Virus record (IMG/VR): IMGVR_UViG_3300023202_000383
Coordinates: 1-64,000 of that record
Reading direction: 5' to 3' (one strand)
DNA: 64,000 nucleotides
Part shown: one piece after another, positions 33,530 through 52,110 of the stretch
Layout of the letters: every line of letters begins with the position of its first letter
How positions within the stretch are numbered: position 1 is the first letter of the stretch
Program-made: the position numbers and the translations under genes
Notes under the pieces: model-generated
What the model was told of the DNA's origin: nothing
Database searches by the model: none
What the model saw: only the letters and a program-made list of their open reading frames with translations

Positions 33530-33702
33530 AAGACGTCGGCAAAGCCAAACTGGAATCAGAGAAAGCTTTAACTGAGTATCTAAAATGCCAGCAAGAACTG
33601 CTGGTAATGATCAATAAACAAATGGATCTGGGAAGAATCTACGCTGAGAAGAGAGCCGAATATTTGGCTTTGAAAGAAGATAATGAGCCAGGAATTGATT
33701 AA
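33526..33702 (+). CDS. small helical hypothetical protein (58 aa, absent from the ORF track)
   Basis: GTG overlapping the upstream TGA; open to TAA at 33702. Confidence 0.45.
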   Translation: MKDVGKAKLESEKALTEYLKCQQELLVMINKQMDLGRIYAEKRAEYLALKEDNEPGID

Positions 33703-35327
33703 GGTTTCAATATAAATTTATAATGTCCAGCATCCCACAGTCTTCTATATTTATTATTAAACATATTTTCGGCCTCGGTAAGACGCGAGTCGAAATTTTC
33801 TAGTAATTTTGATAATTTGTGTTTTTGAAAGTGTTGGCGAGAATACAATATCGATGTGTTGCCGTCTTTATAATATTTATAATTTGGCTTAGTTAAACCG
33901 CATGGTTTGAATCCTAATTTTTTATATAAATTTCCTGTCGAATATCTTGCGTCTGCATATGTTAAAATTGATTTTGGGTCATGTAATGCTATAAAATGAT
34001 TTAGTAGTTTTCCTGCTCCCCCGATAGCTGTTGAACCTATAGCTTGTGCGTATCTTATTATTTCCCATTTATATTTATGGTGCTTGGCAAAAGACATGCA
34101 TGCGACTAATTCTCCATTATATGTTAATCCAATTCTTACCGATGCATCCCGCGATCCATATATATGGTTTTCAGTCATAAATGAATCGTAATCTTTTGTG
34201 TTCAACGATATTATTTTACATTTTCTGGCGTATAATTTTGATGAATACCCAAGTTTATGATTTATTATTGATTTGACTATATTTTGTTTGTTTGACCATT
34301 CGTCCTCGTTTATTTGCAGAAGTTGTATATTGTTTTCTACGCATCTAGTATGTTTAGCTTGATGTTTAAATCTTTCGTCTTTTGATTCAGTATGGTTGTA
34401 TGAATGGTAATATAACCCATTATATTCGATAGCTACGTTATGATTTGGCAGATAGATATCGATTTCTAATGGATATATTGTCTTTCTATCGTTAATAATA
34501 TATTCAGTATTTATCGATTTTATATATTCTATTATTTCTTGGTGTGGTTTAGAAATCGAGTTAGAGCATTTAGGGCATCCGTGTCCGTTTAAATGATTAC
34601 TTACTGTTTGGGAAAAATTGCCGTGTATGATACATGTTATTGTGATTGGTTCCATGTACCCGCTGTAATTGGATTTGTCATATGAATATTTGTCGCCGTG
34701 GATCGATATTGCTCTATTTATTATATCTTCTGTTGTAGGTGTGTTTATTGCACATTTAGGGCAACCGTGGCCTTCGAGGTGCCTTCTGGTTAATTGTTTA
34801 AATTTGCCATGTTTCGGGCATTTTATTATTATGTGACTTCGATATGATTTATATATCGAATCGCTATAATCATATTTGTTATTGTGTAATTTTGATGATT
34901 TATTTATAAAATCGTCAATTGTATTACTTAAATTTTTTATTCCGCATAATTTGCACCCATACTTTCCGTAGATGTGTGATTTTGGTGTTTGTTCGAATTC
35001 GCCGTGTTCTGGGCATATTATTGTGATTTTTGTATAGCTATTGACATACTCAGATTTACTATAATCATACTTATCGCCGTGCACTAATGTTGCTTTTTCT
35101 ATAAATTTATTTAGTGGCAATTTAAGATTTTGTTTTTGTTGTTGCCTAAAACATTTTTTGCATCTTGCGCCTTTTTTGTGATTTCTAGCGCGTTGTCTAA
35201 ACTCTCCGTGTTCCGGGCATATTATTGTGACGCGTCCGCTCAATTCAATTTCTGTAACCTTTGAATAGTCATACTTGTTATTGTGTATCAGGGATGATTC
35301 ATGTATAAAGCGTTGTAATTTATTCAT
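33699..35327 (-). CDS. Hef-like free-standing endonuclease: DUF723-type Zn repeats + Vsr/EDxHD nuclease + Mom/GNAT-like domain
   Basis: Four KYDYSK...ICPxHGxFxQ...CxxC repeats; EIDIYLPNHNVAIEYNGLYYH; GGAGKLL..LTYADARYS.G.LY..LGF. Confidence 0.8.
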   Translation of the reverse strand: MNKLQRFIHESSLIHNNKYDYSKVTEIELSGRVTIICPEHGEFRQRARNHKKGARCKKCFRQQQKQNLKLPLNKFIEKATLVHGDKYDYSKSEYVNSYTKITIICPEHGEFEQTPKSHIYGKYGCKLCGIKNLSNTIDDFINKSSKLHNNKYDYSDSIYKSYRSHIIIKCPKHGKFKQLTRRHLEGHGCPKCAINTPTTEDIINRAISIHGDKYSYDKSNYSGYMEPITITCIIHGNFSQTVSNHLNGHGCPKCSNSISKPHQEIIEYIKSINTEYIINDRKTIYPLEIDIYLPNHNVAIEYNGLYYHSYNHTESKDERFKHQAKHTRCVENNIQLLQINEDEWSNKQNIVKSIINHKLGYSSKLYARKCKIISLNTKDYDSFMTENHIYGSRDASVRIGLTYNGELVACMSFAKHHKYKWEIIRYAQAIGSTAIGGAGKLLNHFIALHDPKSILTYADARYSTGNLYKKLGFKPCGLTKPNYKYYKDGNTSILYSRQHFQKHKLSKLLENFDSRLTEAENMFNNKYRRLWDAGHYKFILKP

Positions 35328-35397
35328 AATAAAATATCTTTGATTACAGATAGATCCTCTGCATTGCGTGTTGTATTTTATATACATGGTTGACATA

Positions 35398-36747
35398 ATG
35401 AAATATAATGGTCCTACAGACTTTGCTCATCTTCATGTCCATACTTTATATAGTACGCTTGATGGGGTTCAATCTCCAGAAGAATTGTTTTCTACGTGCA
35501 AAGAAAGAGGATGGAGTGCGTTAGCCGTAACCGAGCATGGGACATTGGCATCAGTCCCAGACAATTATGCGGCTGCAAAAGAATACGGCGTAAAGTATAT
35601 AGTTGCTTGCGAAATTTATTACAATGATTATGAACCGACTAGGCAAGATCTTGTTAAAGAAGATGTTAAAATTCGCAAGCTAAAAGAAACCGACCCTAAT
35701 TTTTATTATAAAATGTCTAGAAATAGGCATTTAACAGTCCTTGCTAAAAACGATAAGGGTGTGGAGAACATAATAAAATTGACCACTCAAGCGTGGGAGA
35801 CTGGATTTTATTATAGGCCGAGGATATGGTTTGATAAATTAGATGAATATAGAGAGGGTTTATTGGTATTGAGTGGATGTTTAAATGGGCCTGTTTCTCA
35901 TGAGTTAAGACATGGGAATTTAAGGTCTGATGATATGAGAGGTGCATTAGACTATATACATAAATTCAAAGAAGTATTTGGCGATGATTATTTTGTAGAA
36001 TTGCAGATGCCTTGTCTTCCTGATTTTCCTGACCACAAAGTCTTCCGTGCATTAAATCATATAGCTAACAAGTACAATATACCGAAAGTTCTTACAAATG
36101 ACGCACATTATCTAAATCGTGAAGACTTTGAAATCCAGAAATTAATGATGGCTATATCCCAGGGTTTAACTGTTGATGATCCGAATCTGTTCCATGTAAA
36201 TAGTGATGAGCAATATCTTAAAACCAGAGCAGATCTATGGCACACATTTAAGACTGGGAAAGACGGCAAATATTGTGAATATGTGACTGATAGCGAATTT
36301 GAAGATATGTGCAACAACACATTGGTAGTTGCCGGTAAATGTGATAATTTCGAACCTGATTTGTCGTCGAAGGTTCCTACATTAGATAATGACGAGCAGA
36401 TCTTAAGAACCCTTGTGTACGATAGGCTTAAGCAAGAGGGATTCGATAAAGATGAAACTAAGTACAATATAGACAATAAAGAAGTTACTTATAGAGAACA
36501 AGCCGACATAGAATTGAATAGGTTTATTGAGAAGAATTTCGCCAGCTATTTCTTGATAACCAGAGATTTGGTGCAGTATAGTTTAGATAACGGTTGGCCT
36601 GTTGGACCGCGAGGTTCAGTTGGCGGCAGTCTAGTGTGTTATTTATTGGGCATAACCGAGTTGGATCCAATAAAATGGAATTTATCGTTTAACAGGTTTT
36701 TAAGCCCCTCGCGCGGAGGAAAGATGCTAAACATTAAGGCAGAATAG
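35398..36747 (+). CDS. dnaE: DNA polymerase III alpha, fragment 1 (PHP domain + N-terminal palm)
   Basis: HLHVHTLYSTLDG, TEHG, NDAHY, YFLIT, GPRGSVGGSLV, RFLSPSR, then stop. Confidence 0.9.
   Translation: MKYNGPTDFAHLHVHTLYSTLDGVQSPEELFSTCKERGWSALAVTEHGTLASVPDNYAAAKEYGVKYIVACEIYYNDYEPTRQDLVKEDVKIRKLKETDPNFYYKMSRNRHLTVLAKNDKGVENIIKLTTQAWETGFYYRPRIWFDKLDEYREGLLVLSGCLNGPVSHELRHGNLRSDDMRGALDYIHKFKEVFGDDYFVELQMPCLPDFPDHKVFRALNHIANKYNIPKVLTNDAHYLNREDFEIQKLMMAISQGLTVDDPNLFHVNSDEQYLKTRADLWHTFKTGKDGKYCEYVTDSEFEDMCNNTLVVAGKCDNFEPDLSSKVPTLDNDEQILRTLVYDRLKQEGFDKDETKYNIDNKEVTYREQADIELNRFIEKNFASYFLITRDLVQYSLDNGWPVGPRGSVGGSLVCYLLGITELDPIKWNLSFNRFLSPSRGGKMLNIKAE
36728..36746 (+). repeat. direct repeat flanking the inserted endonuclease gene (partner at 38604-38628)
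   Basis: TAAACATTAAGGCAGAATA here; the partner reads TAAACATTAAG-ATTAAG-GCAGAATA. Confidence 0.85.
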
Positions 36748-36777
36748 GTCTAATTCAGTTATAAGCAAATATATAAT

Positions 36778-38613
36778 ATGATAAATGTACAACGAAGCAA
36801 AGAAGTGTTTGGATTAAAAAGCATCAATAGGATTCCTAAAAAACAGAAAGTTATATGTAATTGTGATGTTTGTGGGGTTGAATCACGTATTACTAAGCAG
36901 CACCATTATATATGCAGCAAACGTGCTGGTTTATATAGATGTAAAGATTGTGGTAGAAAAGCCATGGCATCTAAAGTATCAAAAGCCATGATATCAAAAT
37001 GGCAAAACGACAAATACAAATCCAAGCAGATTGGCAGGACTCATAGCGATGAATTAAAGGAATATGCTAGGCAGAGAGCTATCAAATTGTGGAAAGATAA
37101 AGAATATGTGGCAAAGTATAATGCTGGGTTTGACCCGGCCAAGGCTAGAAAGAATCTAAAGGCCACCAGATCGGTTGCCAATAAAGCTGCATCGCTTGCT
37201 ATGGCTGATAAATGGCAGGAAAAAGAATATCGCAGTAAAATGTCAGATCAATCAGCTAAGCTATGGAGTAACGATTGTTATAGAAACAAAGTAATAAGTA
37301 GCCTCAAAAAACATTATTCGTCATTAGAAGTTTTAGATAGATGTTCAAATAGAGCGAAAAAATTGTGGAAGAATAATGATTATAGGGATAGGTGGTTCAA
37401 ATCATTTATGCAATCATTTGGCAATGAAAGGTTACACGAAATTTCATTACAAAGTGCCAAGAATTGGGGAGACCGAGAATATAGAGATAAAATAGAATCA
37501 CAATGGGACGATCAAAAACGTGCAGAAATGTCCGAAATATGTAAAGAATGGTGGACTGATGATAGGAGAGCTGAAGTTTCTGAGATTATGATAAGTAGGT
37601 GGTCGGACCCTAATTTTAGAAAGAAAACAATAAAAGCATTTATTGATTCATGGACTGAAGAACGCAGGCAGGCTGCTAAAGATTCATGGACTGAAGAACG
37701 CAGGCAGGCTGCGTCTGATAGATCCAGGAATTTGTGGAAAGATCCGAAATATGTTAGCAAGATGGTTGATATGATCGGGAGGCCGTCGTCTTTAGAAATT
37801 CAATTCGCCAGCTTATTGGATGATTATGGCATCGAGTACACGCAACAGTTCCATTTAGGGCCATATTTATTTGATTTTAAGGTCAACGATGTCTTAATAG
37901 AAATTAATGGCGATTATTGGCATAGATTGCCGAAGACAATATCAAAAGACAAGGCTAAAGCTACTTATGTTGAAAAACATTATCAGCAATATCAGCTTAA
38001 GTATTTATGGGAGCATGAATTTTATCAATTAGAAAAGATTAATAAATTTATTGAATTCAGTTTTGTTGGTTCTGACGTAGAAGAGGTTGATTTTTCAGAA
38101 TTAAAATTTGTTACTGATATAGATTATGATTCAATAAAATCGTTAATTGAGAAATATCATTATAAAGGAAGTATTGGTCGGGGTGGGGTGTATTATGGTG
38201 TTATATATCGTGGTAATTTGATCGCTGGGTCTGTTGTTGGGTCACCAACTAGGAATGTTGTTGGTGGCGAGTTGTTACGATTTGTTATACACCCACAGTA
38301 TCAGGTCAAGAATCTTGCATCGTGGTTTTTGAGTAGAATCTCAAAGCATGCTTTGAGAGATTATGATTTATTGTTTACATTTGCTGATCCGAATTTTAAC
38401 AATTACGGCACAATATATGAGGCTAGCGGCTGGGAATTTGCTGGCGAAACAAAATCAGATTATTGGTATGTTAGCGAAGACGGTTGGGTTATGCATAAAA
38501 AGACTTTATGGAATAGAGCAAAGAATTTATGTATGTCAGAAAGGTATTTTGCTGAGGTTTTTGGATATAATCGGGTATATGGGTTGCCAAAGAGAAAGTA
38601 TATTAAACATTAA
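36778..38613 (+). CDS. free-standing endonuclease: helical W-repeats + DUF559/Vsr-like nuclease + Mom-like GNAT domain
   Basis: PSSLE...FDFKVNDVLIEINGDYWH; ELLRF...NLASWFLS...TFADPNFNNYGTIYEASGW. Confidence 0.8.
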   Translation: MINVQRSKEVFGLKSINRIPKKQKVICNCDVCGVESRITKQHHYICSKRAGLYRCKDCGRKAMASKVSKAMISKWQNDKYKSKQIGRTHSDELKEYARQRAIKLWKDKEYVAKYNAGFDPAKARKNLKATRSVANKAASLAMADKWQEKEYRSKMSDQSAKLWSNDCYRNKVISSLKKHYSSLEVLDRCSNRAKKLWKNNDYRDRWFKSFMQSFGNERLHEISLQSAKNWGDREYRDKIESQWDDQKRAEMSEICKEWWTDDRRAEVSEIMISRWSDPNFRKKTIKAFIDSWTEERRQAAKDSWTEERRQAASDRSRNLWKDPKYVSKMVDMIGRPSSLEIQFASLLDDYGIEYTQQFHLGPYLFDFKVNDVLIEINGDYWHRLPKTISKDKAKATYVEKHYQQYQLKYLWEHEFYQLEKINKFIEFSFVGSDVEEVDFSELKFVTDIDYDSIKSLIEKYHYKGSIGRGGVYYGVIYRGNLIAGSVVGSPTRNVVGGELLRFVIHPQYQVKNLASWFLSRISKHALRDYDLLFTFADPNFNNYGTIYEASGWEFAGETKSDYWYVSEDGWVMHKKTLWNRAKNLCMSERYFAEVFGYNRVYGLPKRKYIKH

Positions 38614-38628
38614 GATTAAGGCAGAATA

Positions 38629-39015
38629 ATGGATAAGAATCAGATTAAGTTAGGAATAACATCTATACAGCGATCCGTTGTTGTGTGCAATAGGTTGGGG
38701 CTGTTTGAAGCAGCGTCGGCTGCTGTTTACAGTATGATAGATGCTATAAACGCTTTGGTAGAAGGCAACGAAGAAACTGCTGCTGAAGATTGTTTCAAAT
38801 CATCGTTTCTGATATATAAGGTTTTGTACGAATCATTTTCTGAAAAGTTTGAGAAGAGATCCAGTCTAGCGGAAGACGCGGAGAAAATTCTGAAAGAATC
38901 CAATGATTGGAATGCATTTGCAAAAGCGTCCAGTAATTATATGGATGCAATAGCAGAGGTTGTACATGGAACGGAATTCGAGGCCGAATTCTTGAAATTT
39001 AAAGTTGGCTCCTGA
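38629..39015 (+). CDS. hypothetical helical protein between dnaE fragments
   Basis: TAATG-coupled start. Confidence 0.65.
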   Translation: MDKNQIKLGITSIQRSVVVCNRLGLFEAASAAVYSMIDAINALVEGNEETAAEDCFKSSFLIYKVLYESFSEKFEKRSSLAEDAEKILKESNDWNAFAKASSNYMDAIAEVVHGTEFEAEFLKFKVGS

Positions 39016-39496
39016 TAAAATAGACATATATTGCTTTGCTAGAGGCAAGGATAGTCCATACGCATATGGCATCCTTGTGGTCGCACATTATGGCGAAGAG
39101 TGTAAAGAGCACGAGAAATTTGGTTTCGTAGATGCGAAAACGCCTACTGAGGCCAATATCAAGATAATATTGATGGCGTTGAAGTCCGTTAAAGATGACT
39201 TTAAGGACCTCGATATCACTCTTCATGTAAGAAAATCTGCATTTTATTGTGTTGATAGAACATCTTGGGGAACCTATAGAACAAAGCCAACCAGACATCA
39301 TAAACTGATAGGTGCGGTGAGAAGTTTGTTTGACGAGCTTCCTAATGCAAGATCAAAGATGATATTCTCCAAATACCAAAAGTATGCTAAAAGATGTATA
39401 AAAAAGTCTAGGAGCATGTTTCATGCGAAACGACGCGAGTTGGGACGATATAAAGGTGATAGCGGTCAAGGAGCTCGTCCAGAAAAAGCTACCTAA
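39005..39496 (+). CDS. RNase HI-fold protein, catalytic acidic residues lost
   Basis: IDIYCFA (for IYTDG), YGILV, TPTEANIKIILMAL, ITLHVRKS (for TDS). Confidence 0.5.
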   Translation: MAPDKIDIYCFARGKDSPYAYGILVVAHYGEECKEHEKFGFVDAKTPTEANIKIILMALKSVKDDFKDLDITLHVRKSAFYCVDRTSWGTYRTKPTRHHKLIGAVRSLFDELPNARSKMIFSKYQKYAKRCIKKSRSMFHAKRRELGRYKGDSGQGARPEKAT

Positions 39497-41192
39497 CGAG
39501 TATAAGTCTAGATTTAAGACAGAAATAAAAGAGATCGAAAAGCAAGGTGCCAATGCCTATTGGCAGCAGCTATATAACGAAGATCACAAATACGACACGA
39601 ATAACAATGGTTTGGTCTTGCCCTGGATATTAGGCATGACCGATGTTGATCCTTTAAAATCAGACCATCAATATACAAGGTCGACGGACTGGCCTGACAT
39701 AGATGTTGACTGCTTACCGACAGCCAGAGATAGGATCAAAGAATATGCTGCAGAGAAATATGGCAAAGACAAAGTCTGTAGCGTAGGGTTGTGGCAGACA
39801 TATAAATTTAGGTCAGCATTACAAGACTCTGTTAGAGGTGTTGGTGGTAATGTCAAAGAAATCATGGACATCACTAAGCAGTTGCCGGATGATGTTGACG
39901 ATCTGAAAGATGGTGGTTTTGCAAAGTGCACTGAATGTAAAACGAAGCATAATGAGCATAAATGCCCAGAATGTGGATCAACAGAAATAGATGGGATCAC
40001 ATTTGGGAAGGTGATAGAAGATCATGAAGAATTAAAGAAATATTATGGAGAGCATCCTAAAGAAGTCAATCTAGCCGTTAGAATGATAGGAAAAATAAAA
40101 GCGCTGGGTAAACACGCTGGCGGCCTTATTATATCTGATAGAGTGCTATTCGGAAATGTCCCTATGGGCGTTTCAAATGGCCATTGGACAAGTTTGTGGA
40201 CTGAAGGCAGGAGTACTCAATTATCTAAATTCGGGTATATTAAGTGGGATATGCTTGGCCTTAAAACTTTGCAGTATATTCATGAGTGCTGCAAATTAAT
40301 CAATAAAACCAGAAATTACAAGTTTAATGTTATTCCATGGAAAGGAATGGACCCATGGGAAAACTGTCTTGGATACTATTGGGATAATAATGGCGTAAAA
40401 CACAAAGTGAGGATGGATGACGAAAAAACCTTTGAGATGATGAACGCCATAAGGACCGATACAGTATTCCAATTCGACACGGCACTGCAGAAGAAGATTT
40501 TAGAAAATGGCGTAAACAGCTTTTATGATTTACAGATATTTAATGCAATGGGCCACCCAGGTCCGTTGCCAATGATCGATGAGTATGTAGCTCGACGTGA
40601 CAATGAGGACTACGATTGGAAGAGCGAGGAGCATCCTGATGTTGCATCGTTGCTTAAAGACACAAAGGGTATCATAGTATATCAGGAGCAATTGCAGAAG
40701 ATCTGGCAACATTTGGCTAAATTCACGGCTCCCGAAGCTGAATCTGCGAGGAAGGCTGTTGCTAAGAAATGGACGGAAAAACTAAAGCCTGTTGAGGAGA
40801 AGTGGGTAAGGGGCGCATCTAAGATAATGGGCGAGCGGCGGGCTAAAGATTACTGGGGGAAGATGAAAACTTTCGGTAGGTATGCCTTCAATAAATGCCT
40901 GGACAAAGATACTATATTAGAAGATCCTACAAATGGCAATACTATAACTGTTGAAGAGCTTTTTGAATCTAAATCGAGCTTTAAATTAGAATCTTATTGT
41001 GATGATGGATTTGTGGTCGATGACGTTGATGAGATAATCGAATGCGGTGAACAAGATATTTATGAAATAGAATTAGATAATGGGGCGATTCAGAAAGTCA
41101 CTTTGAATCATAAGTTTAGGTGCGATGATGGAAAATACTGGACAGTCAAAGAAATCATCGAAGGCAATTATTCCATCGTGGTTCGACCATAA
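39423..41192 (+). CDS. dnaE: DNA polymerase III alpha, fragment 2 (catalytic palm/fingers) fused to N-half of split intein (40896-41189)
   Basis: WPDIDVDC, GKHAGG, IKWDMLGLKTL, IVYQEQ, YAFNK|CLDKDT...KVTLNHKF. Confidence 0.9.
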   Translation: MRNDASWDDIKVIAVKELVQKKLPNEYKSRFKTEIKEIEKQGANAYWQQLYNEDHKYDTNNNGLVLPWILGMTDVDPLKSDHQYTRSTDWPDIDVDCLPTARDRIKEYAAEKYGKDKVCSVGLWQTYKFRSALQDSVRGVGGNVKEIMDITKQLPDDVDDLKDGGFAKCTECKTKHNEHKCPECGSTEIDGITFGKVIEDHEELKKYYGEHPKEVNLAVRMIGKIKALGKHAGGLIISDRVLFGNVPMGVSNGHWTSLWTEGRSTQLSKFGYIKWDMLGLKTLQYIHECCKLINKTRNYKFNVIPWKGMDPWENCLGYYWDNNGVKHKVRMDDEKTFEMMNAIRTDTVFQFDTALQKKILENGVNSFYDLQIFNAMGHPGPLPMIDEYVARRDNEDYDWKSEEHPDVASLLKDTKGIIVYQEQLQKIWQHLAKFTAPEAESARKAVAKKWTEKLKPVEEKWVRGASKIMGERRAKDYWGKMKTFGRYAFNKCLDKDTILEDPTNGNTITVEELFESKSSFKLESYCDDGFVVDDVDEIIECGEQDIYEIELDNGAIQKVTLNHKFRCDDGKYWTVKEIIEGNYSIVVRP

Positions 41193-41920
41193 AATTATAA
41201 GCTACAATGATAATATAAAAAGTAATGATACAATAAAATCAATATGTTCAATATGCGGCGATAAAACAAGTAGAAAATTTATCGAACATAAAAGGCTGTG
41301 CAATAGGCAATCAAGATATGTTAGCTCATATCGGTGCCGGTCTTGCCTGACAAAGTCAGATGATTACAAAATCAAAATAAAAAAAGCTGAATTCGACACA
41401 GATGCTATGAGTAAGAGGTCAAAAAAGCATTGGGCTAATTTATCAAAGCACGATCGTAAGGCATTAACTAGCAAGATAACAGCCAAATTAAGAACTGATG
41501 CTGTAAGAGAAAAAATTAGCAAGTCTATAAAAGAAAAATTTGACGATCCAGATTATATTCGTAAAGTTTCGGAGGCGAGAAAGAAATATTGGGAAAATTA
41601 TGAATATAGGAAAAATAGGACGTTATCGATAGATGAATTTATAGAGAGATCTAAGTCAGTTCATGGCGATAAGTATGATTATTCGAAAGTTCAATTCGAT
41701 TCTGCCAGGAATTCTAAAGTTGATATTATATGTCCAGATCATGGTGTCTTCCGACAAAGACCGTTATGGCATTATTTGTATGGTAATGGGTGCCCAGATT
41801 GTTAGACAAGAATTCCAAAAGCACAAACTTAGCGGTAAATTAGACAATTTTGATAGTAATTTGACTGAACTACAGAATATGTTCAATAATGGATATAGGG
41901 TGGGATGCTGGACACAATAA
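41125..41920 (+). pseudogene. internally deleted Hef-like endonuclease remnant between the intein halves
   Basis: ORF 41125-41805 has W-repeats and one DUF723 repeat, then stops; 41805-41920 in another frame reads RQEFQKHKL...LTELQNMFNNGY, the family's C-terminal end; nuclease and GNAT domains are absent. Confidence 0.7.
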
Positions 41921-41922
41921 AT

Positions 41923-43071
41923 ATGAATGGAAACGTAGCTAAAATAAAGTCTATAAAATATGTCGGTAAAAGAAGATCATACAACATATGTATGGAATCT
42001 AGCCAACATAATTATTTAATAAAACCATCTAGCGGGCAACCTATTCATAAAAATTCCCATAGCATAGGCTATATAACGGAGGCATATTGGTGTGCATGGT
42101 TAAAGGCTCACTTTCCGCCAGAATGGTGGGCGTCTGTTATGAGTTATTGCCACCATGTGAGACTCAAGAGATACATGAATGTGGCAAGGTCTGAGGGCGT
42201 TAAATTTGGTCCTATAAATATAGAGGACCTGTCACCATATTATTCAGTCGACCCAGAGACGCATAAAGTCACTCCTGGTCTTATAAGCATAAAGGGGATC
42301 GGCCAGAAAGCTGCAGACAAACTGTCTGGTAAAGGAAAGTATGATAATATAGATGATTTCGTGGATAAATTTGGAAAAGACAAAAGGGTGATGGAAAGAT
42401 TGATACTTCTTGGTGCTTTTCAGAAATACCACCCAAATATAAAAGCCACTTGGATTTGGTACCAATATAAATATTGTAGTGGCGCTGCCTCTAGAGAAAT
42501 CAAGAAGCACATTAAGTCTGAACTGCTGGCTGACTGGACCGATGAGAGAATTGAACAAGAACGCAAAAGACAGGCGGATGAATATTTTAAATTGTATCCA
42601 AATAGGCGTAAGCTTCCGAATAAGATAGCCAACTGGAATCCTAAGCCTGATGATACAAGAGAAAATGTTATGGCATTGATAGAAGACGATTATGCTAATG
42701 CCGAAAAATTCAATTTTGAAAAGGAATATCTAGGGTACTATTGGAGGAATCCAATAGAATATTTTAAGACTGATTCAGATAATACAATTATAAATGCCAA
42801 GAAGAATGGTGGGGGGTTCATAGATGTAGTGATAGAGTCTTTCGAAATAGCGGAGACTCGCAAAGGAGGATTATTCGGCAGGTTGGCAGTAATGGATGGC
42901 AGCACAGCCTGTAACGTATACATGTGGGAAGGCGAGCTCGATGCCTCTGAGAGCTTCATCGATGACGGGATAGGTATTAGACTAAATGTTGATTATAACG
43001 ACGGAAGAAGGACATTCTCAGTCAAGAGAGGATCAGTTCCTGTGATACTTGAGATGTCTGAGGACCAGTAG
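41923..43071 (+). CDS. dnaE: C-half of split intein (41923-42054) fused to DNA polymerase III alpha fragment 3 (HhH + OB)
   Basis: KIKSIKYVGKRRSYNI...IHKN|SHSIGY..AYWCAWLKAHFP; GLISIKGIG; EKEYLG. Confidence 0.88.
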   Translation: MNGNVAKIKSIKYVGKRRSYNICMESSQHNYLIKPSSGQPIHKNSHSIGYITEAYWCAWLKAHFPPEWWASVMSYCHHVRLKRYMNVARSEGVKFGPINIEDLSPYYSVDPETHKVTPGLISIKGIGQKAADKLSGKGKYDNIDDFVDKFGKDKRVMERLILLGAFQKYHPNIKATWIWYQYKYCSGAASREIKKHIKSELLADWTDERIEQERKRQADEYFKLYPNRRKLPNKIANWNPKPDDTRENVMALIEDDYANAEKFNFEKEYLGYYWRNPIEYFKTDSDNTIINAKKNGGGFIDVVIESFEIAETRKGGLFGRLAVMDGSTACNVYMWEGELDASESFIDDGIGIRLNVDYNDGRRTFSVKRGSVPVILEMSEDQ

Positions 43072-47575: not shown

Positions 47576-49741
47576 ATGTCAGGAGGCAACATGGCTAAAG
47601 GCAAAAAAGAAAGCAAGACAGACTATTCGAACATGGACATAGACAGTCTGATGAGTAGTCTTAACAAGAAATATGGTGAGGGGTCTGTGCAGAAGTATGA
47701 TAGGGCCGCAATAGTGTCGTGCGATACTATAAGCACTGGCGTGGCCACTTTAGATGATGCTTTGCATATTGGCGGAGTACCTAAAGGGCGGGTAATAGAA
47801 ATCTATGGCCCCGAATCTGGCGGCAAGACTACTCTATCTCTGTCTATCGTAGCCGAATGCCAGGCTGCCGGTGGGACAGCGGCATTTATTGATGCTGAGC
47901 ACGCGTTGGATGTTCAGTGGGCGCACGACATTGGTGTTGATGTAGAATCATTGCTGATAAGCCAGCCGGATTCTGGCGAGCAGGCGTTGGAAATCTGCGA
48001 AGCTATGGTTAGATCGAACAAGTTTGGTATTATAGTGGTTGATTCGGTTGCAGCCCTTGTTCCTAAAGCCGAAATTGATGGTGAAATGGGCGATGCCCAT
48101 GTTGGTCTGCAGGCCAGGATGATTAGTCAGGGTATGAGAAAGCTATCTGGTGCAGTTAAGACCAGCAATACATGCTTGGTATTTATTAATCAGCTTCGCG
48201 AGAAGATCGGCGTGATGTTTGGGTGTTTACATGCTGACAATCTTATAAATTTTTCGGATGGCAAGTCGGCCACAATAAAAGACGTTGTTGATAATAAAAT
48301 CAAAGGATCAGTATGGTCTTATGATGAGGAATTAGACGAATTTTGTGAATGCCAGATTACTGATTGGCATTTCAATGGTGAAGTCAGTAATCCAGAGGAT
48401 TATTTATCTATTTCAATAAAAGGATCTGGTAATAAAAATGGGCGAATGAATATAATTGTGACGCCCGACCACGATGTGCTTACTGATTATGGCTGGGTTC
48501 GGGCAACCGATCTGGATATCGGAGACAAATTAATAACCAAGCAGCAAGATGTTATGTGTGGTGATTTAGGAAATTTTCTTAGAGGGACATTGTCTGGCGA
48601 TTCGCATATATCTCAAGCGGATGGGCACCTGTGTGCAAGTTTGAAAATCAGGGATAATATTGATATTAATTATGCAAAATGGAAGGCAAATAAGTTGTCT
48701 GCAATCAGTATGACCAAAAAGACTTATGGTAAATATGATATATATACTTCTGGGCAATTTTCTCAATTTGTTGACATAAAAGAAGATTTCCCAAACAGGG
48801 ACCCTATGCTTTTGTTGAGTAGTTTTAGTTGGCTTGGTTTTGCTATATGGATAATGGATGATGCTTGTTATAATAGAAGTAGATATGTTTTGTCTATTAA
48901 AAGGCTAAAAGGCGACCATAAAAAGATCGATGAAATTAGTAAGACACTAGACGACCTAGGCTTATATCATCATTCTAGTTATGGCGGGAAAATCACGTTC
49001 GACAAAGACATATCTGATATGATTGCCCATAAGATAGCCAAATATGTTCCTATATGTATGCGTCATAAATTACCAAATGACGTTGAATTAGATAATTATT
49101 GCGAATTTGAATTGAAGAATTCAACGAAGCAGTGCAAGACTTATGCAGAGGTTGTTGATATACGTACCGCAAGCAATAGACAAATGAAAAATGTCGGAAA
49201 ATATGATATTTCAGTGGACAGATGCCACAATTATTCCGTTGGTGGGAGACATAATGGCGTTATTGTGCACAATTCGCCCGAAACAACGCCTGGCGGTAGG
49301 GCACTGAAATTCTATGCATCAGTTAGGCTAGATGTTAGACGTACTGGAATAGAAAAAGACGGCGATACGCCGATTGGAAGTAAGGTTAGGGTAAAAGTTG
49401 TTAAGAACAAAGTGGCTCCGCCATTCTCGCAGGCTGAATTTGTTATATACTATGGCAAAGACGAGATGCCAGTATATGGTCCTGATAAGTTCGGATCCAT
49501 CTTAGATATGGCGGTAGATAAGGATATTGTTGGTAAAAGCGGGTCGTGGTATGAGTATAATGGCGATAAAATAGGGAATGGTAGGACTAACGCTGTAAGA
49601 TTCTTACAGGATTCTGATTCAGTGTCTGAGGAAATCAAAGCTAAATTGGCCGATCTTAGGAAAGCGCGTGTTGCTGAGGTCAATGAGGCCGATGAAGTTG
49701 ATGAAATCAAAGACGAAGACACAGAATCGGAAGGTGATTGA
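47576..49741 (+). CDS. recA: RecA recombinase with intein
   Basis: [46 protein letters not shown]|...|[14 protein letters not shown]. Confidence 0.95.
48224..49273 (+). mobile_element. 350-aa intein with LAGLIDADG-type endonuclease in RecA
   Basis: Starts CLHAD, block [15 protein letters not shown] and AIWIMDDA helices, ends IVHN before Ser. Confidence 0.92.
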
Positions 49742-50091
49742 TGGCACCATTTAGGCCACGATTTTCAGTTGGAGATATTGTATATCTCGTTGAATCTGCT
49801 AAGTTAGGATCACTAGAATCTTATACAATAGCTGAAGTGCGGCAGGATTTAAGGGGCCAGGCGATTTATAGAATTGGAATTCCTGCGAGGCCACCTACTG
49901 CTTTGCAAACGGTTGGCGACAGAATTACTTTAAAGAGAAGCTTCGATTTTGAGCTTAGTGAGTCTGAATTAACAGATTTATGTAGTGCTATTGAATTCGC
50001 AAAGGCTGCTTTGGAGCGGCAGCTCGCTAGAATTAATGATATTTCCGATAAGTTCTGCAGCGATGAGACTGATGGGACAGGTACTGAATGA
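49741..50091 (+). CDS. hypothetical protein
   Basis: Coupled to recA and to the helicase gene. Confidence 0.65.
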   Translation: MAPFRPRFSVGDIVYLVESAKLGSLESYTIAEVRQDLRGQAIYRIGIPARPPTALQTVGDRITLKRSFDFELSESELTDLCSAIEFAKAALERQLARINDISDKFCSDETDGTGTE

Positions 50092-50921
50092 GCTTAAAGG
50101 CTCTTGAAAATGATGAGCCGAACGACTCGCCGTTTGGTAATTATGAAGAAGAAGCAATAGCTTCCTTGATTTTAGACCATCCTGAATTTTTCACCCATAT
50201 TGCCAAATTTATAACATATAAACTTTTCAAAAGACCTGAAGTACAGTATATTATTGCAAATATTGTTGAATACCATGACAAGTACAATGAATTCCCTACT
50301 AGGGGAATATTGAAAGACACTATAGCCAAACAGTTGACCGTTGATGATGAATATGTAGACGATATATTATCTATCGTAGACAGGCCATCGAATCCCAGAG
50401 AAATACCAGCAATAAAAGACAGATTGTTAGAATGGGCAAAGACTCAAGCATATAGTTTGCTTTGGGACAAAGAAACAATTGATAGGTACAAGCAAGGCGA
50501 TTATGACTATATAGAACAGGTAGTGAATGAAGCGAAGCTGATACAGGACGTTAGTTCTACGGGACTGTGGTTCTTTGATGAACTGGAAAGTTTATTCTAT
50601 AGAGACGAGAAAGAAAGATTCACAACTGGGATTTATGAATTAGATCAATTGCTAGACGAAGGCGGACCATCCAGAGGCGATGAAGTAGTATGGATGGCAC
50701 CGACGGGTGTCGGCAAATGCCATACTCTAGAATCAAAGATGATTGAAGAAAATTTGTCAGGAATCTTTGAAATAGAGCTAGACAATGGCAAGACTCTCAA
50801 ACTCGCAGGATTTAGAGAAGTTCAAACAGCACGTGGGCCAGTAAAGGTCTGCGATCTTACCGAAGAAGACGATATTGTCGAGATACCAAATATCAGAGAT
50901 GGGGGGGATATATCTGTGTAA
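50088..50921 (+). CDS. dnaB: replicative helicase DnaB/gp41 N-part fused to N-half of split intein (50718-50918)
   Basis: EEAIASLIL, RFTTGIYELDQLL, WMAPTGVGK|CHTLES. Confidence 0.85.
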   Translation: MSLKALENDEPNDSPFGNYEEEAIASLILDHPEFFTHIAKFITYKLFKRPEVQYIIANIVEYHDKYNEFPTRGILKDTIAKQLTVDDEYVDDILSIVDRPSNPREIPAIKDRLLEWAKTQAYSLLWDKETIDRYKQGDYDYIEQVVNEAKLIQDVSSTGLWFFDELESLFYRDEKERFTTGIYELDQLLDEGGPSRGDEVVWMAPTGVGKCHTLESKMIEENLSGIFEIELDNGKTLKLAGFREVQTARGPVKVCDLTEEDDIVEIPNIRDGGDISV

Positions 50922-51009
50922 GCATTGCGAATTCTCTACGATCTCATCGATTTTAATCATATAAGCTCCAAACATGGAAGGCTGAACGACAATCTAAGGA
51001 AATTTATAC

Positions 51010-52110
51010 GTGAAAATAAAATCAATTAATAAGACTAACCAATATAAGCATGTGGACTTCGGGATGCTTGCTGAACGATGGAATAAGTCTAGGGTTCTTA
51101 CGCCAACTGGATTTGAAGAGGTAAAAGCATTCGATTTAATAAAACGAGATGCCCCCACTTTATTGCTTAGCATAGATAATGGTATGGAGATTAAGTGTGA
51201 TCCAAATCATAAAATTGTCTGTGAATCATACAAATCGGACAGTGAGACCAGTGAAATAATAGAGAAGTTCGTTAAAGACTTAGACCCAGGCACAGACAAG
51301 CTGATAGGATATGGTGGTCAACGTAGGTCATTCGAAGTGCGTGATGGTGGTACGCACGATCTATATGATATCGAAATTTGTTCGCCACATTTGTATTATA
51401 CAGCTGGCGTTTTGAGCCATAATAGCATTATGCTAGTCAATAATGCGATTGCTAACTCAAAAAAGAGCAAGAATGTTTTATATATAACTTTGGAATTGTC
51501 CCATTTAAAATCTGCGTTGAGAGGCTTAGGCGCATTGTCAAATAAATCGATAGTTGGAGAGAGCAGATTTGACAATAAAGATGATATGATAGATGTTGCC
51601 AGAAAGGTAAAAGCGAGTGGTGCTGGCGATATCGTTTTTTATCAGTACCCACCGGAAGAAATAGATGTTGATACAATATATGCATTGATAGACACTCTTA
51701 GAAAAAACGAGAAATGGCACCCAGATGTTGTAATAATTGATTATCTCGAATTAATGCTCAGTCGAAGAGACTCAGATAACTCCGAAGATTACATTAGACA
51801 AAAGAATGTTTCTACTCAGATAAGAGGCTTGGCTATTAATGAGAATGTTTGTGTCTTTACAGCCACACAAACCAATAGAAGTGGCAATGATGATAGCAAA
51901 ATGATAGATGTCACCAAGATATCTGAAAGCTATGGAAAATCTATGGCGATGGATTATTTGATAAGTATTAACCAATCACCAGATGAGTATTCGTCAACGC
52001 CAGCACAAGCCAGGTTATATGTTGCTAAAAACCGTAATGGCCCTAAATTCATAAGTATTCCAATCAAGATAAACTACAAAACAATGTCCGTTAAGGAGAT
52101 AGACCAATGA
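51010..52110 (+). CDS. dnaB: C-half of split intein (51010-51423) fused to helicase C-part
   Basis: AAGGA RBS + GTG; block B KCDPNH, LYDIEI, LSHN|SIMLVN; YITLE, IIDYLELM, TATQTNR, KNRNG. Confidence 0.87.
   Translation: MKIKSINKTNQYKHVDFGMLAERWNKSRVLTPTGFEEVKAFDLIKRDAPTLLLSIDNGMEIKCDPNHKIVCESYKSDSETSEIIEKFVKDLDPGTDKLIGYGGQRRSFEVRDGGTHDLYDIEICSPHLYYTAGVLSHNSIMLVNNAIANSKKSKNVLYITLELSHLKSALRGLGALSNKSIVGESRFDNKDDMIDVARKVKASGAGDIVFYQYPPEEIDVDTIYALIDTLRKNEKWHPDVVIIDYLELMLSRRDSDNSEDYIRQKNVSTQIRGLAINENVCVFTATQTNRSGNDDSKMIDVTKISESYGKSMAMDYLISINQSPDEYSSTPAQARLYVAKNRNGPKFISIPIKINYKTMSVKEIDQ

Follow-up and report, generated by a model that had tools for sequence, protein, structure and literature searches.

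Split inteins are widely used in protein ligation and labelling, and very short N-terminal intein fragments (IntN) are the most useful for semisynthesis, yet such fragments have low affinity and are poorly behaved. Here we describe a naturally split intein that interrupts a phage replicative helicase gene within positions 1 to 64,000 of the IMG/VR virus record IMGVR_UViG_3300023202_000383 (hereafter, the window, meaning the whole 64,000-nucleotide (nt) stretch that was analysed; its contig spans 332 kb). Among the described systems, the canonical inteins of fractured genes (gp41-1, NrdJ-1, IMPDH-1) have an IntN of 88-105 amino acids (aa) and a C-terminal fragment (IntC) of 33-54 aa, and an unusual terminase intein has a 122-aa IntC that lacks only the N1 region (PMC2677866). 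Natural atypical inteins possess a short IntN with nothing else on it, the shortest one characterised being the 15-aa IntN of PolB16 OarG (PMC10189870). In an artificial pair derived from the Ssp DnaX intein (Song, Meng and Liu, 2012), a 139-aa C-terminal fragment (IC) trans-splices with an 11-aa N-terminal fragment (IN) embedded in a 144-aa near-complete intein fragment; the pair is unaffected by mutation of the N fragment's block B, whereas block B on the IC is essential (PMC3443213).

The intein found in the window departs from the canonical proportions, its fragments measuring 67 and 138 aa, and both its N2 region and its functional block B lie in the IntC. Like the atypical inteins (AceL-TerL, GOS-TerL, VidaL and PolB16 OarG; consensus Cat, PDB 6DSL), it combines a long IntC bearing the N2 region and blocks B, F and G with an IntN that gives only block A to catalysis. 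In comparison with them, however, the fold is broken earlier, at about residue 9, and yet the IntN is not short, owing to a dead lobe that forms a conserved, Hint-derived tail of 58 aa. In length and composition the family to which this intein belongs falls outside both the canonical and the atypical split inteins, and it does not have the makeup of a nested intein. We interpret it as a redundant, overlapping split intein in which an atypical, S1-type split is combined with a vestigial canonical lobe, a reading to which we assign a probability of roughly 0.6. The family probably represents a previously undescribed set of naturally split class-1 inteins, inserted at the K|S of Walker A in large phages with RecA, gp32 and Pol A. 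The open-access papers and preprints searched contained no account of a split intein with a catalytic strand and a conserved dead block-B lobe on its IntN, in keeping with the new architecture suggested by the original prediction for this locus, which had been made from the sequence alone.

Results

The two open reading frames (ORFs) that encode the halves (Table 1) are a DnaB/gp41-like helicase interrupted between the K and the S of the Walker A motif. In BLASTP comparisons with the intein-free helicase of Pseudomonas phage Nican01, the alignment of the N-extein stops at the Walker A GK and that of the C-extein begins at the very next residue, the Walker A Ser, which places the break exactly at the K|S of the P-loop. 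The two ORFs lie in different frames and are separated by 88 nt; an AAGGA sequence stands 9 nt 5' of the GTG start codon of ORF2, and the frame of ORF2 upstream of this codon is closed by stops. The ORF coordinates, the AAGGA sequence and the Nican01 alignment bear out the original prediction of a helicase broken in its P-loop across two genes in different frames, the second with its own ribosome-binding site (RBS), and the motifs listed there (CHTLES, a block-B-like stretch without its His, VLTPTG, CDPNH, F and G) are likewise all present. Because the break parts two residues of Walker A, ligation would be needed for helicase function. In the gap between the genes (50922..51009), neither RNA structure (z +1.1) nor promoter or terminator signals exceeded chance.

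The second gene begins with the 138-aa IntC, in which the N2 region and blocks B, F and G are all present. Residues C63, H67, H127, H137 and N138 are invariant among the aligned C-halves. The His of a TxxH-type block B is supplied by the KCDPNH motif, and the SHN|S junction, also invariant, provides the penultimate His, the terminal Asn and the +1 nucleophile that define block G of class 1 inteins. A phmmer search of the PDB with the IntC identified CatC (E 7.7e-5, the best sequence match to a solved structure) and gp41-1 (E 7.6e-3) as the nearest solved relatives, and the match to Pfam Intein_splicing fell below threshold. Judged from its sequence, the IntC is almost a whole class-1 Hint domain of the atypical type; the earlier assignment of the locus to the atypical split inteins, with the real blocks B, F and G on the IntC, was thus well founded. 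The 27-residue head of the IntC has a net charge of +1 to +4 (mean +2.7). In its first strand the head is similar to the beginning of canonical IntC fragments such as P0051 and the IntC of the window's DnaE gene. A profile of the head, when compared with canonical inteins, matched neither block A nor block F significantly.

The IntN comprises a strand of about 9 aa that begins with Cys1, followed by the 58-aa tail. The nucleophile at intein position 1 (Cys211 of ORF1) is invariant in 24 homologues, as are H2, L4 and S6. A Pfam scan and a PDB sequence search with the IntN returned no match. Beyond the family itself, a profile of the IntN matched canonical IntN fragments and mini-inteins of other phage genes over their C-terminal halves, with E values between 2e-6 and 1e-3 in 1.84 billion proteins. 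Positions 13-58 of the profile are colinear with these canonical inteins (27-41 bits), and LAGFREV aligns over ITGNHKV, so that the TxxH of canonical block B reads AxxR in the tail, with Ala in place of Thr and Arg in place of the catalytic His. Both G31 and R33 of this degenerate block B are invariant among the 24 homologues. The tail ends where canonical IntN fragments end, at the point used canonically for the split and for endonuclease insertion. The segment extends over about 45-58 aa and includes neither an N2 region nor a block A, F or G of its own.

On these alignments, the tail is homologous to the block-B hairpin and following strands of a canonical IntN, that is, to the second half of the IntN fragments of canonical fractured-gene inteins, and the degenerate, Hint-derived block B that the original prediction saw in the IntN is confirmed by the profile match to canonical block B and the strands that follow it. 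Whereas a canonical IntN has a working TxxH, the IntN of the window lacks the N2 region and the catalytic Thr and His. A recent internal duplication of the IntC was considered as a source of the tail and rejected, since the IntN profile scored at most 4 bits against IntC bodies in a local hmmsearch and hhalign of the IntN against the IntC gave an E value of 0.0076 and a probability of 5%. The canonical DnaE split intein of the window, with only 7 bits, was rejected as well. The contrast between these low scores against its own IntC and the much higher ones against foreign canonical inteins indicates that the tail would come from a different, canonical lineage. Within the tail, all 24 aligned N-halves have Cys45 (50850-50852), as they have Cys1 (50718); L009, L013, P0041 and P0059 carry a different residue in its place, and some canonical relatives also have a Cys at this position.

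The relation of the tail to the active intein is illuminated by three contiguous helicases (P0008, P0044 and P0059). P0008 (579 aa) is encoded on 7 contigs and is represented here by three loci from 3 samples. Its 128-aa intein is complete and consists of IntN residues 1-9 joined directly to the IntC head, exactly residues 10-67 of the IntN being absent, and its 32 N-terminal residues resemble an ordinary block A. The 58-aa tail is therefore an add-on to a complete mini-intein, and the IntC head (KIKSI...KHVDFGML) would supply strands 2-3 of block A of the active intein. By the same comparison, the tail would be dispensable in cis. The tail is present in the other two contiguous proteins, P0044 (637 aa) and P0059 (629 aa), where 2-7 residues connect it to the head. 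The tail of P0059 is degenerate, scoring 39 bits as against 77-129 for split members and having lost R33, R39 and C45, and that of P0044 scores 76 bits, similar to the most divergent split member (L009); together they give a weak hint that constraint on the tail may be relaxed in cis. A third homologue search for contiguous proteins with the tail returned only P0044 itself.

Comparison of P0008 (L002, 4480-5100) with the split member P0006 (L005, 585-1000) revealed identical DNA at the intein's 3' end and in the adjoining, aligned stretch of the extein; towards the 5' side of the intein, DNA identity is only about 70% (assessed by eye). Such a pattern points to a recombination breakpoint inside the intein, and hence to recombination between intein alleles. 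A repeat, AAAATTA, which falls on the SKII and MKIK codons, flanks the segment (tail plus intergenic gap) that is absent from P0008.

As a surrogate for the two chains of the window, the contiguous P0044 intein was folded as a single chain with AlphaFold2. The input alignment (A5) was assembled from trimmed pieces, and the junction region of the model is based on two sequences; MAFFT alignments mixing N and C pieces (A3, A4) laid the IntN tail onto the IntC body. The model had a mean predicted local distance difference test (pLDDT) score of 73 and a predicted template modelling (pTM) score of 0.62, and folded the tail as five short strands (pLDDT 83-91), which we take to be beta7-beta11 of the canonical IntN topology. 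The stretch equivalent to KIKSI was modelled at low confidence, and the next stretch formed a strand and a helical turn at the position of the canonical block-A strand. In Foldseek searches the model, and with it a relative of the window's pair, was recognised as a Hint fold, matching the gp41-1, NrdJ-1, DnaB and VidaL inteins, VidaL being among the best fold matches (E ~1e-6; template modelling score normalised to the target, TMt, 0.6-0.72). Since these matches cover only ~125 of its 213 residues (score normalised to the query, TMq, ~0.45), the model is best described as one ordinary Hint domain with an extra piece. Because the IntC head is kept in P0008, which has no tail, and because the P0044 model places a strand and helical turn at the block-A position, the head is predicted to be at least partly a component of the active intein.

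These observations bear directly on an alternative in which the tail and the IntC head (KIKSI...) make up a degenerate split Hint unit, complete in itself and nested within the active intein, that zips together in the manner of canonical IntN and IntC to act as a clasp and deliver the catalytic strand. The original prediction had proposed such a nested second module, with the split point inside it and the IntC head assigned to it. In its favour, the homology of the IntN C-terminus to canonical IntN C-termini makes the break the canonical split site for the module, the head starts like canonical IntC fragments, and the charges of tail and head are complementary. The tail is indeed an extra element, without which P0008 makes do. 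It is, however, a partial lobe that consists of block B and post-B strands only, with no Cys1, terminal Asn or splice junctions of its own, and, in the absence of blocks A, F and G, it does not amount to a Hint domain. The head is retained in P0008 as the apparent source of block A strands 2-3, its profile has no significant match to block F, and in the P0044 model the low-confidence KIKSI equivalent is followed by a strand and helical turn like strand 3 of canonical block A. The head would thus be at least partly a component of the active intein and the split would fall at the edge of the module, not inside it. Taken together, these points make a nested clasp of this kind unlikely.

The sequence record suggests that the tail is under constraint and has been retained by selection. 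Across 24 sequences the IntN shows 16 invariant positions and a fixed length, and its last 22 residues have a mean net charge of -7.2 (range -11 to -4). Mean pairwise identity is 63% in the IntN as against 41% in the N-extein, the IntN being the more conserved in 273 of 276 pairs, and in the six genomes with both halves it reaches 0.55 in the IntN and 0.46 in the IntC (IntN higher in 13 of 15 pairs). All split family members found carry the tail. The fixed length, the invariant positions, the conservation above both extein and IntC and the presence of the tail in every split member found are difficult to reconcile with a functionless leftover of a canonical IntN, carried along by horizontal spread of the intein and contributing nothing to splicing. 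That reading, which accommodates the dispensability of the tail in the contiguous P0008, the dispensability of block B on the N fragment of the engineered Ssp DnaX analogue and the loss of the catalytic Thr and His from the tail, therefore appears improbable.

Searches with the window's own fragments retrieved 23 further N-halves, with 58-75% identity over the IntN part, and 10 further C-halves, with 34-57% identity in the search with the IntC part; the IntN profile search, run on 1.84 billion cluster representatives (50%-identity clusters), yielded 10 family members with E < 1e-10. In the phage loci examined, family members are syntenic and the helicase halves are adjacent, in the order RecA, small ORF, helicase, Pol A and gp32. 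Several alleles hold an additional ORF between the halves. In L005 this is a free-standing ORF with NUMOD3 and DUF559/Vsr-like domains, in L012 a NUMOD3 and DUF559/Vsr-like ORF broken in two, in L008 a 295-aa ORF with a NUMOD3 match and a sub-threshold DUF559 match, and on the contig of P0003 a 299-aa ORF that is a candidate homing-endonuclease-like (HEN-like) gene. No endonuclease-like ORF separates the halves in the window, L009 or L013. The two halves have separate genes, and some alleles interpose a free-standing homing endonuclease gene, an arrangement of the 'fractured gene' type of Dassa et al. 2009 (PMC2677866).

A further alternative is that no splicing takes place and that the Hint-derived pieces serve only to join the helicase fragments as non-covalent interaction domains. 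A phage ribonucleotide reductase fractured by a mobile endonuclease is reported to be assembled without splicing (PMC3045599), and the window itself contains a break in DnaE with no recognisable intein. Against this stand the invariance of Cys1, the block B His, the penultimate His, the terminal Asn and Ser+1, and a break that parts the K and S of Walker A, which need contiguity; assembly without splicing is accordingly very improbable for the helicase. An assembly or sequencing error that split one continuous gene, which the original prediction had named as a possible refutation and which has nothing in its favour beyond a priori possibility, can be dismissed, as the same stop/start arrangement and conserved termini recur in dozens of independent assemblies (at least 24 N-halves, 10 further cluster representatives and 10 C-halves, all from independent samples; the same split on more than 30 independent metagenomic phage contigs), several of them with an endonuclease gene between the halves.

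The closest relative in a cultured phage is found in Vibrio phage vB_VmeM-32 (KU160494), where the same host protein is interrupted by an atypical split intein with a long IntC (28% identity over IntC and extein). Its IntN differs in being 27 aa long and having no Hint-like tail, and its insertion site, GVN|TGKS, lies 3 residues upstream of that in the window. The IntC of this split helicase (L001, 1029-4104) measures about 117 aa, neither half is annotated in GenBank, and the halves are separated by a 378-aa ORF, without a Pfam match, that may be an endonuclease gene.

Table 1. Features of the split helicase locus and of the fractured DnaE gene, in window coordinates
Feature	Positions	Strand	Description and basis
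ORF1, N-half gene	50088..50921	+	277 aa; TGVGK, then Cys211 and 66 further residues, then TAA
N-extein	50088..50717	+	N-terminal domain of DnaB/gp41-like replicative helicase, to GK of Walker A; weak Pfam DnaB N-terminal match, BLASTP
IntN core	50718..50744	+	Cys1 and first strand, block A CHTLESKMI; 9 residues, invariant positions, kept in P0008
IntN tail	50745..50918	+	Vestigial canonical IntN lobe: short linker, block-B hairpin, post-B strands, acidic end; 58 aa, profile
Degenerate block B	50799..50819	+	KLAGFRE, A30/R33 replacing T/H of TxxH; residue-by-residue alignment
Acidic C-terminal end of IntN	50853..50918	+	Net charge about -7 across the family
Intergenic gap with RBS	50922..51009	+	88 nt; AAGGA at 50996-51000; stops in every frame; no endonuclease gene
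ORF2, C-half gene	51010..52110	+	366 aa; GTG start; 138 intein residues to SHN, then Ser+1
IntC head	51010..51090	+	27 aa, basic; predicted remainder of the active intein's block A (strands 2-3); alignment to P0008 residues 6-32
IntC body	51091..51423	+	N2 (VLTPTG), blocks B, F and G, ending HN; PDB phmmer, invariant residues
Functional block B	51193-51210	+	KCDPNH; C63 and H67 invariant
Blocks F and G	51358-51423	+	Ending HN; H127, H137 and N138 invariant
C-extein	51424..52110	+	Ser+1 (Walker A serine) and RecA-like ATPase core; Pfam DnaB_C 4e-12, BLASTP
DnaE piece 1	35368..36747		PHP and start of NTPase domain
DnaE piece 2	39423..41192		Rest of NTPase domain and finger; ends in canonical 98-aa IntN (CLDKDT...TLNH)
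DnaE piece 3	41905..43071		HHH; starts with 50-aa IntC ending HKN|S

Further inteins and possible mobile elements are present near the helicase genes. The gene for the alpha subunit of DNA polymerase III (DnaE; 35368-43071) is fractured into at least 3 genes, and the second and third pieces are bounded by a canonical split intein whose fragments of 98 and 50 aa provide an internal contrast to the 67 and 138 aa of the helicase intein. An ORF inside this split intein locus (41125..41805) is a possible endonuclease and has a HGDKYDYS repeat in common with a minus-strand ORF of 565 aa (33699-35396), which contains four DUF723/treble-clef zinc-finger repeats (HGDKYDYS...CPxHG). The first DnaE break (36748-39422) has no recognisable intein at either edge and holds a 611-aa ORF (36778..38613) with a Mom-family domain together with two small ORFs; here the gene may have been split by a mobile element without splicing. 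Upstream of the helicase, the RecA/UvsX gene (47576-49741) contains a contiguous intein of 350 aa (~48224-49273; G|CLHADN ... VHN|S) with a LAGLIDADG endonuclease domain. The RecA proteins of L009 (737 aa) and L012 (691 aa), the latter with a Pfam Intein_splicing match, are long enough for such an insert, and those of L002, L006 and L007 are intein-free. The IntN profile search also recovered P0052 and P0054, middle fragments of another phage ATPase/helicase-like gene that have an atypical-type IntC of ~132 aa at their start and a canonical IntN of 97-98 aa at their end; that gene must therefore be in at least 3 pieces, joined by two different kinds of split intein.

Discussion

The results presented above lead us to propose that the two gene products of the helicase locus would associate and trans-splice to yield a working P-loop. 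The active Hint fold would be broken after its first strand, at about residue 9, as in engineered S1/S11 splits, and the invariant residues suggest a catalytic set made up of Cys1 on the IntN, the block B His, block F His, penultimate His and terminal Asn on the IntC, and Ser+1. The other 58 residues of the IntN would be a catalytically dead remnant, derived from the second half of an IntN of canonical type that belonged to another intein lineage, and, as this remnant would duplicate content of the IntC, the two halves would overlap. The tail would play no part in catalysis. Its acidic end, facing the basic head of the IntC, may instead confer the affinity and/or solubility that a 9-residue IntN would lack by itself. 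An association role for the tail is plausible because of its charge complementarity with the head (-7.2 versus +2.7) and its strong conservation; the acidic IntN end and basic IntC head probably drive association, and the dead lobe may act as a docking handle. The arrangement likely arose when a canonical split allele recombined with a contiguous mini-intein allele that occupied the same site, after which the redundant N2 region and the catalytic residues of block B would have been lost from the IntN.

The family shares several traits with canonical fractured-gene inteins. In both, the genes for the two halves adjoin one another, some alleles place a free-standing Vsr-like/NUMOD3 endonuclease gene between them while others have lost it, opposite charges face each other at the split, and a phage helicase serves as host gene. 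The insertion site at the K|S of Walker A differs from those of gp41-1 to gp41-7, and gp41-8 and gp41-9 are inserted at other, unspecified points. The same logic as proposed here underlies the engineered S1-type pair of Ssp DnaX, in which a large IC without only the first 11 residues is combined with a redundant N fragment. That pair, however, is artificial and its redundant part is an unmodified near-complete intein, whereas the natural family has fixed and conserves a trimmed remnant of 58 aa.

Several observations weigh against our reading of a redundant, overlapping split intein. Recent horizontal spread of the intein, and not constraint, could account for part of the higher identity of the IntN. 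The case for relaxed constraint in cis involves two contiguous sequences, and clear degeneration is confined to P0059. In the P0044 model, the Cys1 strand has a pLDDT of 41-66 and the junction (model residues 68-88) is also of low confidence. Folded alone, the IntN forms a four-stranded meander (pLDDT 64.6) with no significant Foldseek match. Lastly, the recombination origin is reached by inference only.

Beyond the redundant, overlapping split itself, we tentatively entertain a more specific proposal, which we hold to be possible, although short of an even chance, in which the dead half-lobe pairs with the basic IntC head as a docking unit of high affinity, dedicated to that task and left over as a fossil from a canonical split intein. 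This unit would bring the catalytic strand of ~9 residues into an otherwise complete IntC. If this were true, binding and catalysis would be assigned to different Hint-derived pieces, and the family would be a two-tier split intein of natural origin, its catalytic IntN shorter than any other known, with a portable clasp that might rescue low-affinity S1-type splits. The family may show a natural remedy for the low affinity of short IntN fragments, in which a trimmed, inactive piece of a canonical IntN has been appended to a minimal catalytic strand, and its split members with the tail, contiguous members with it and contiguous members without it provide ready-made natural controls for the appendage. 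In evolutionary terms, the family would document how two intein lineages recombined at a single insertion site and how a catalytic lobe turned structural.

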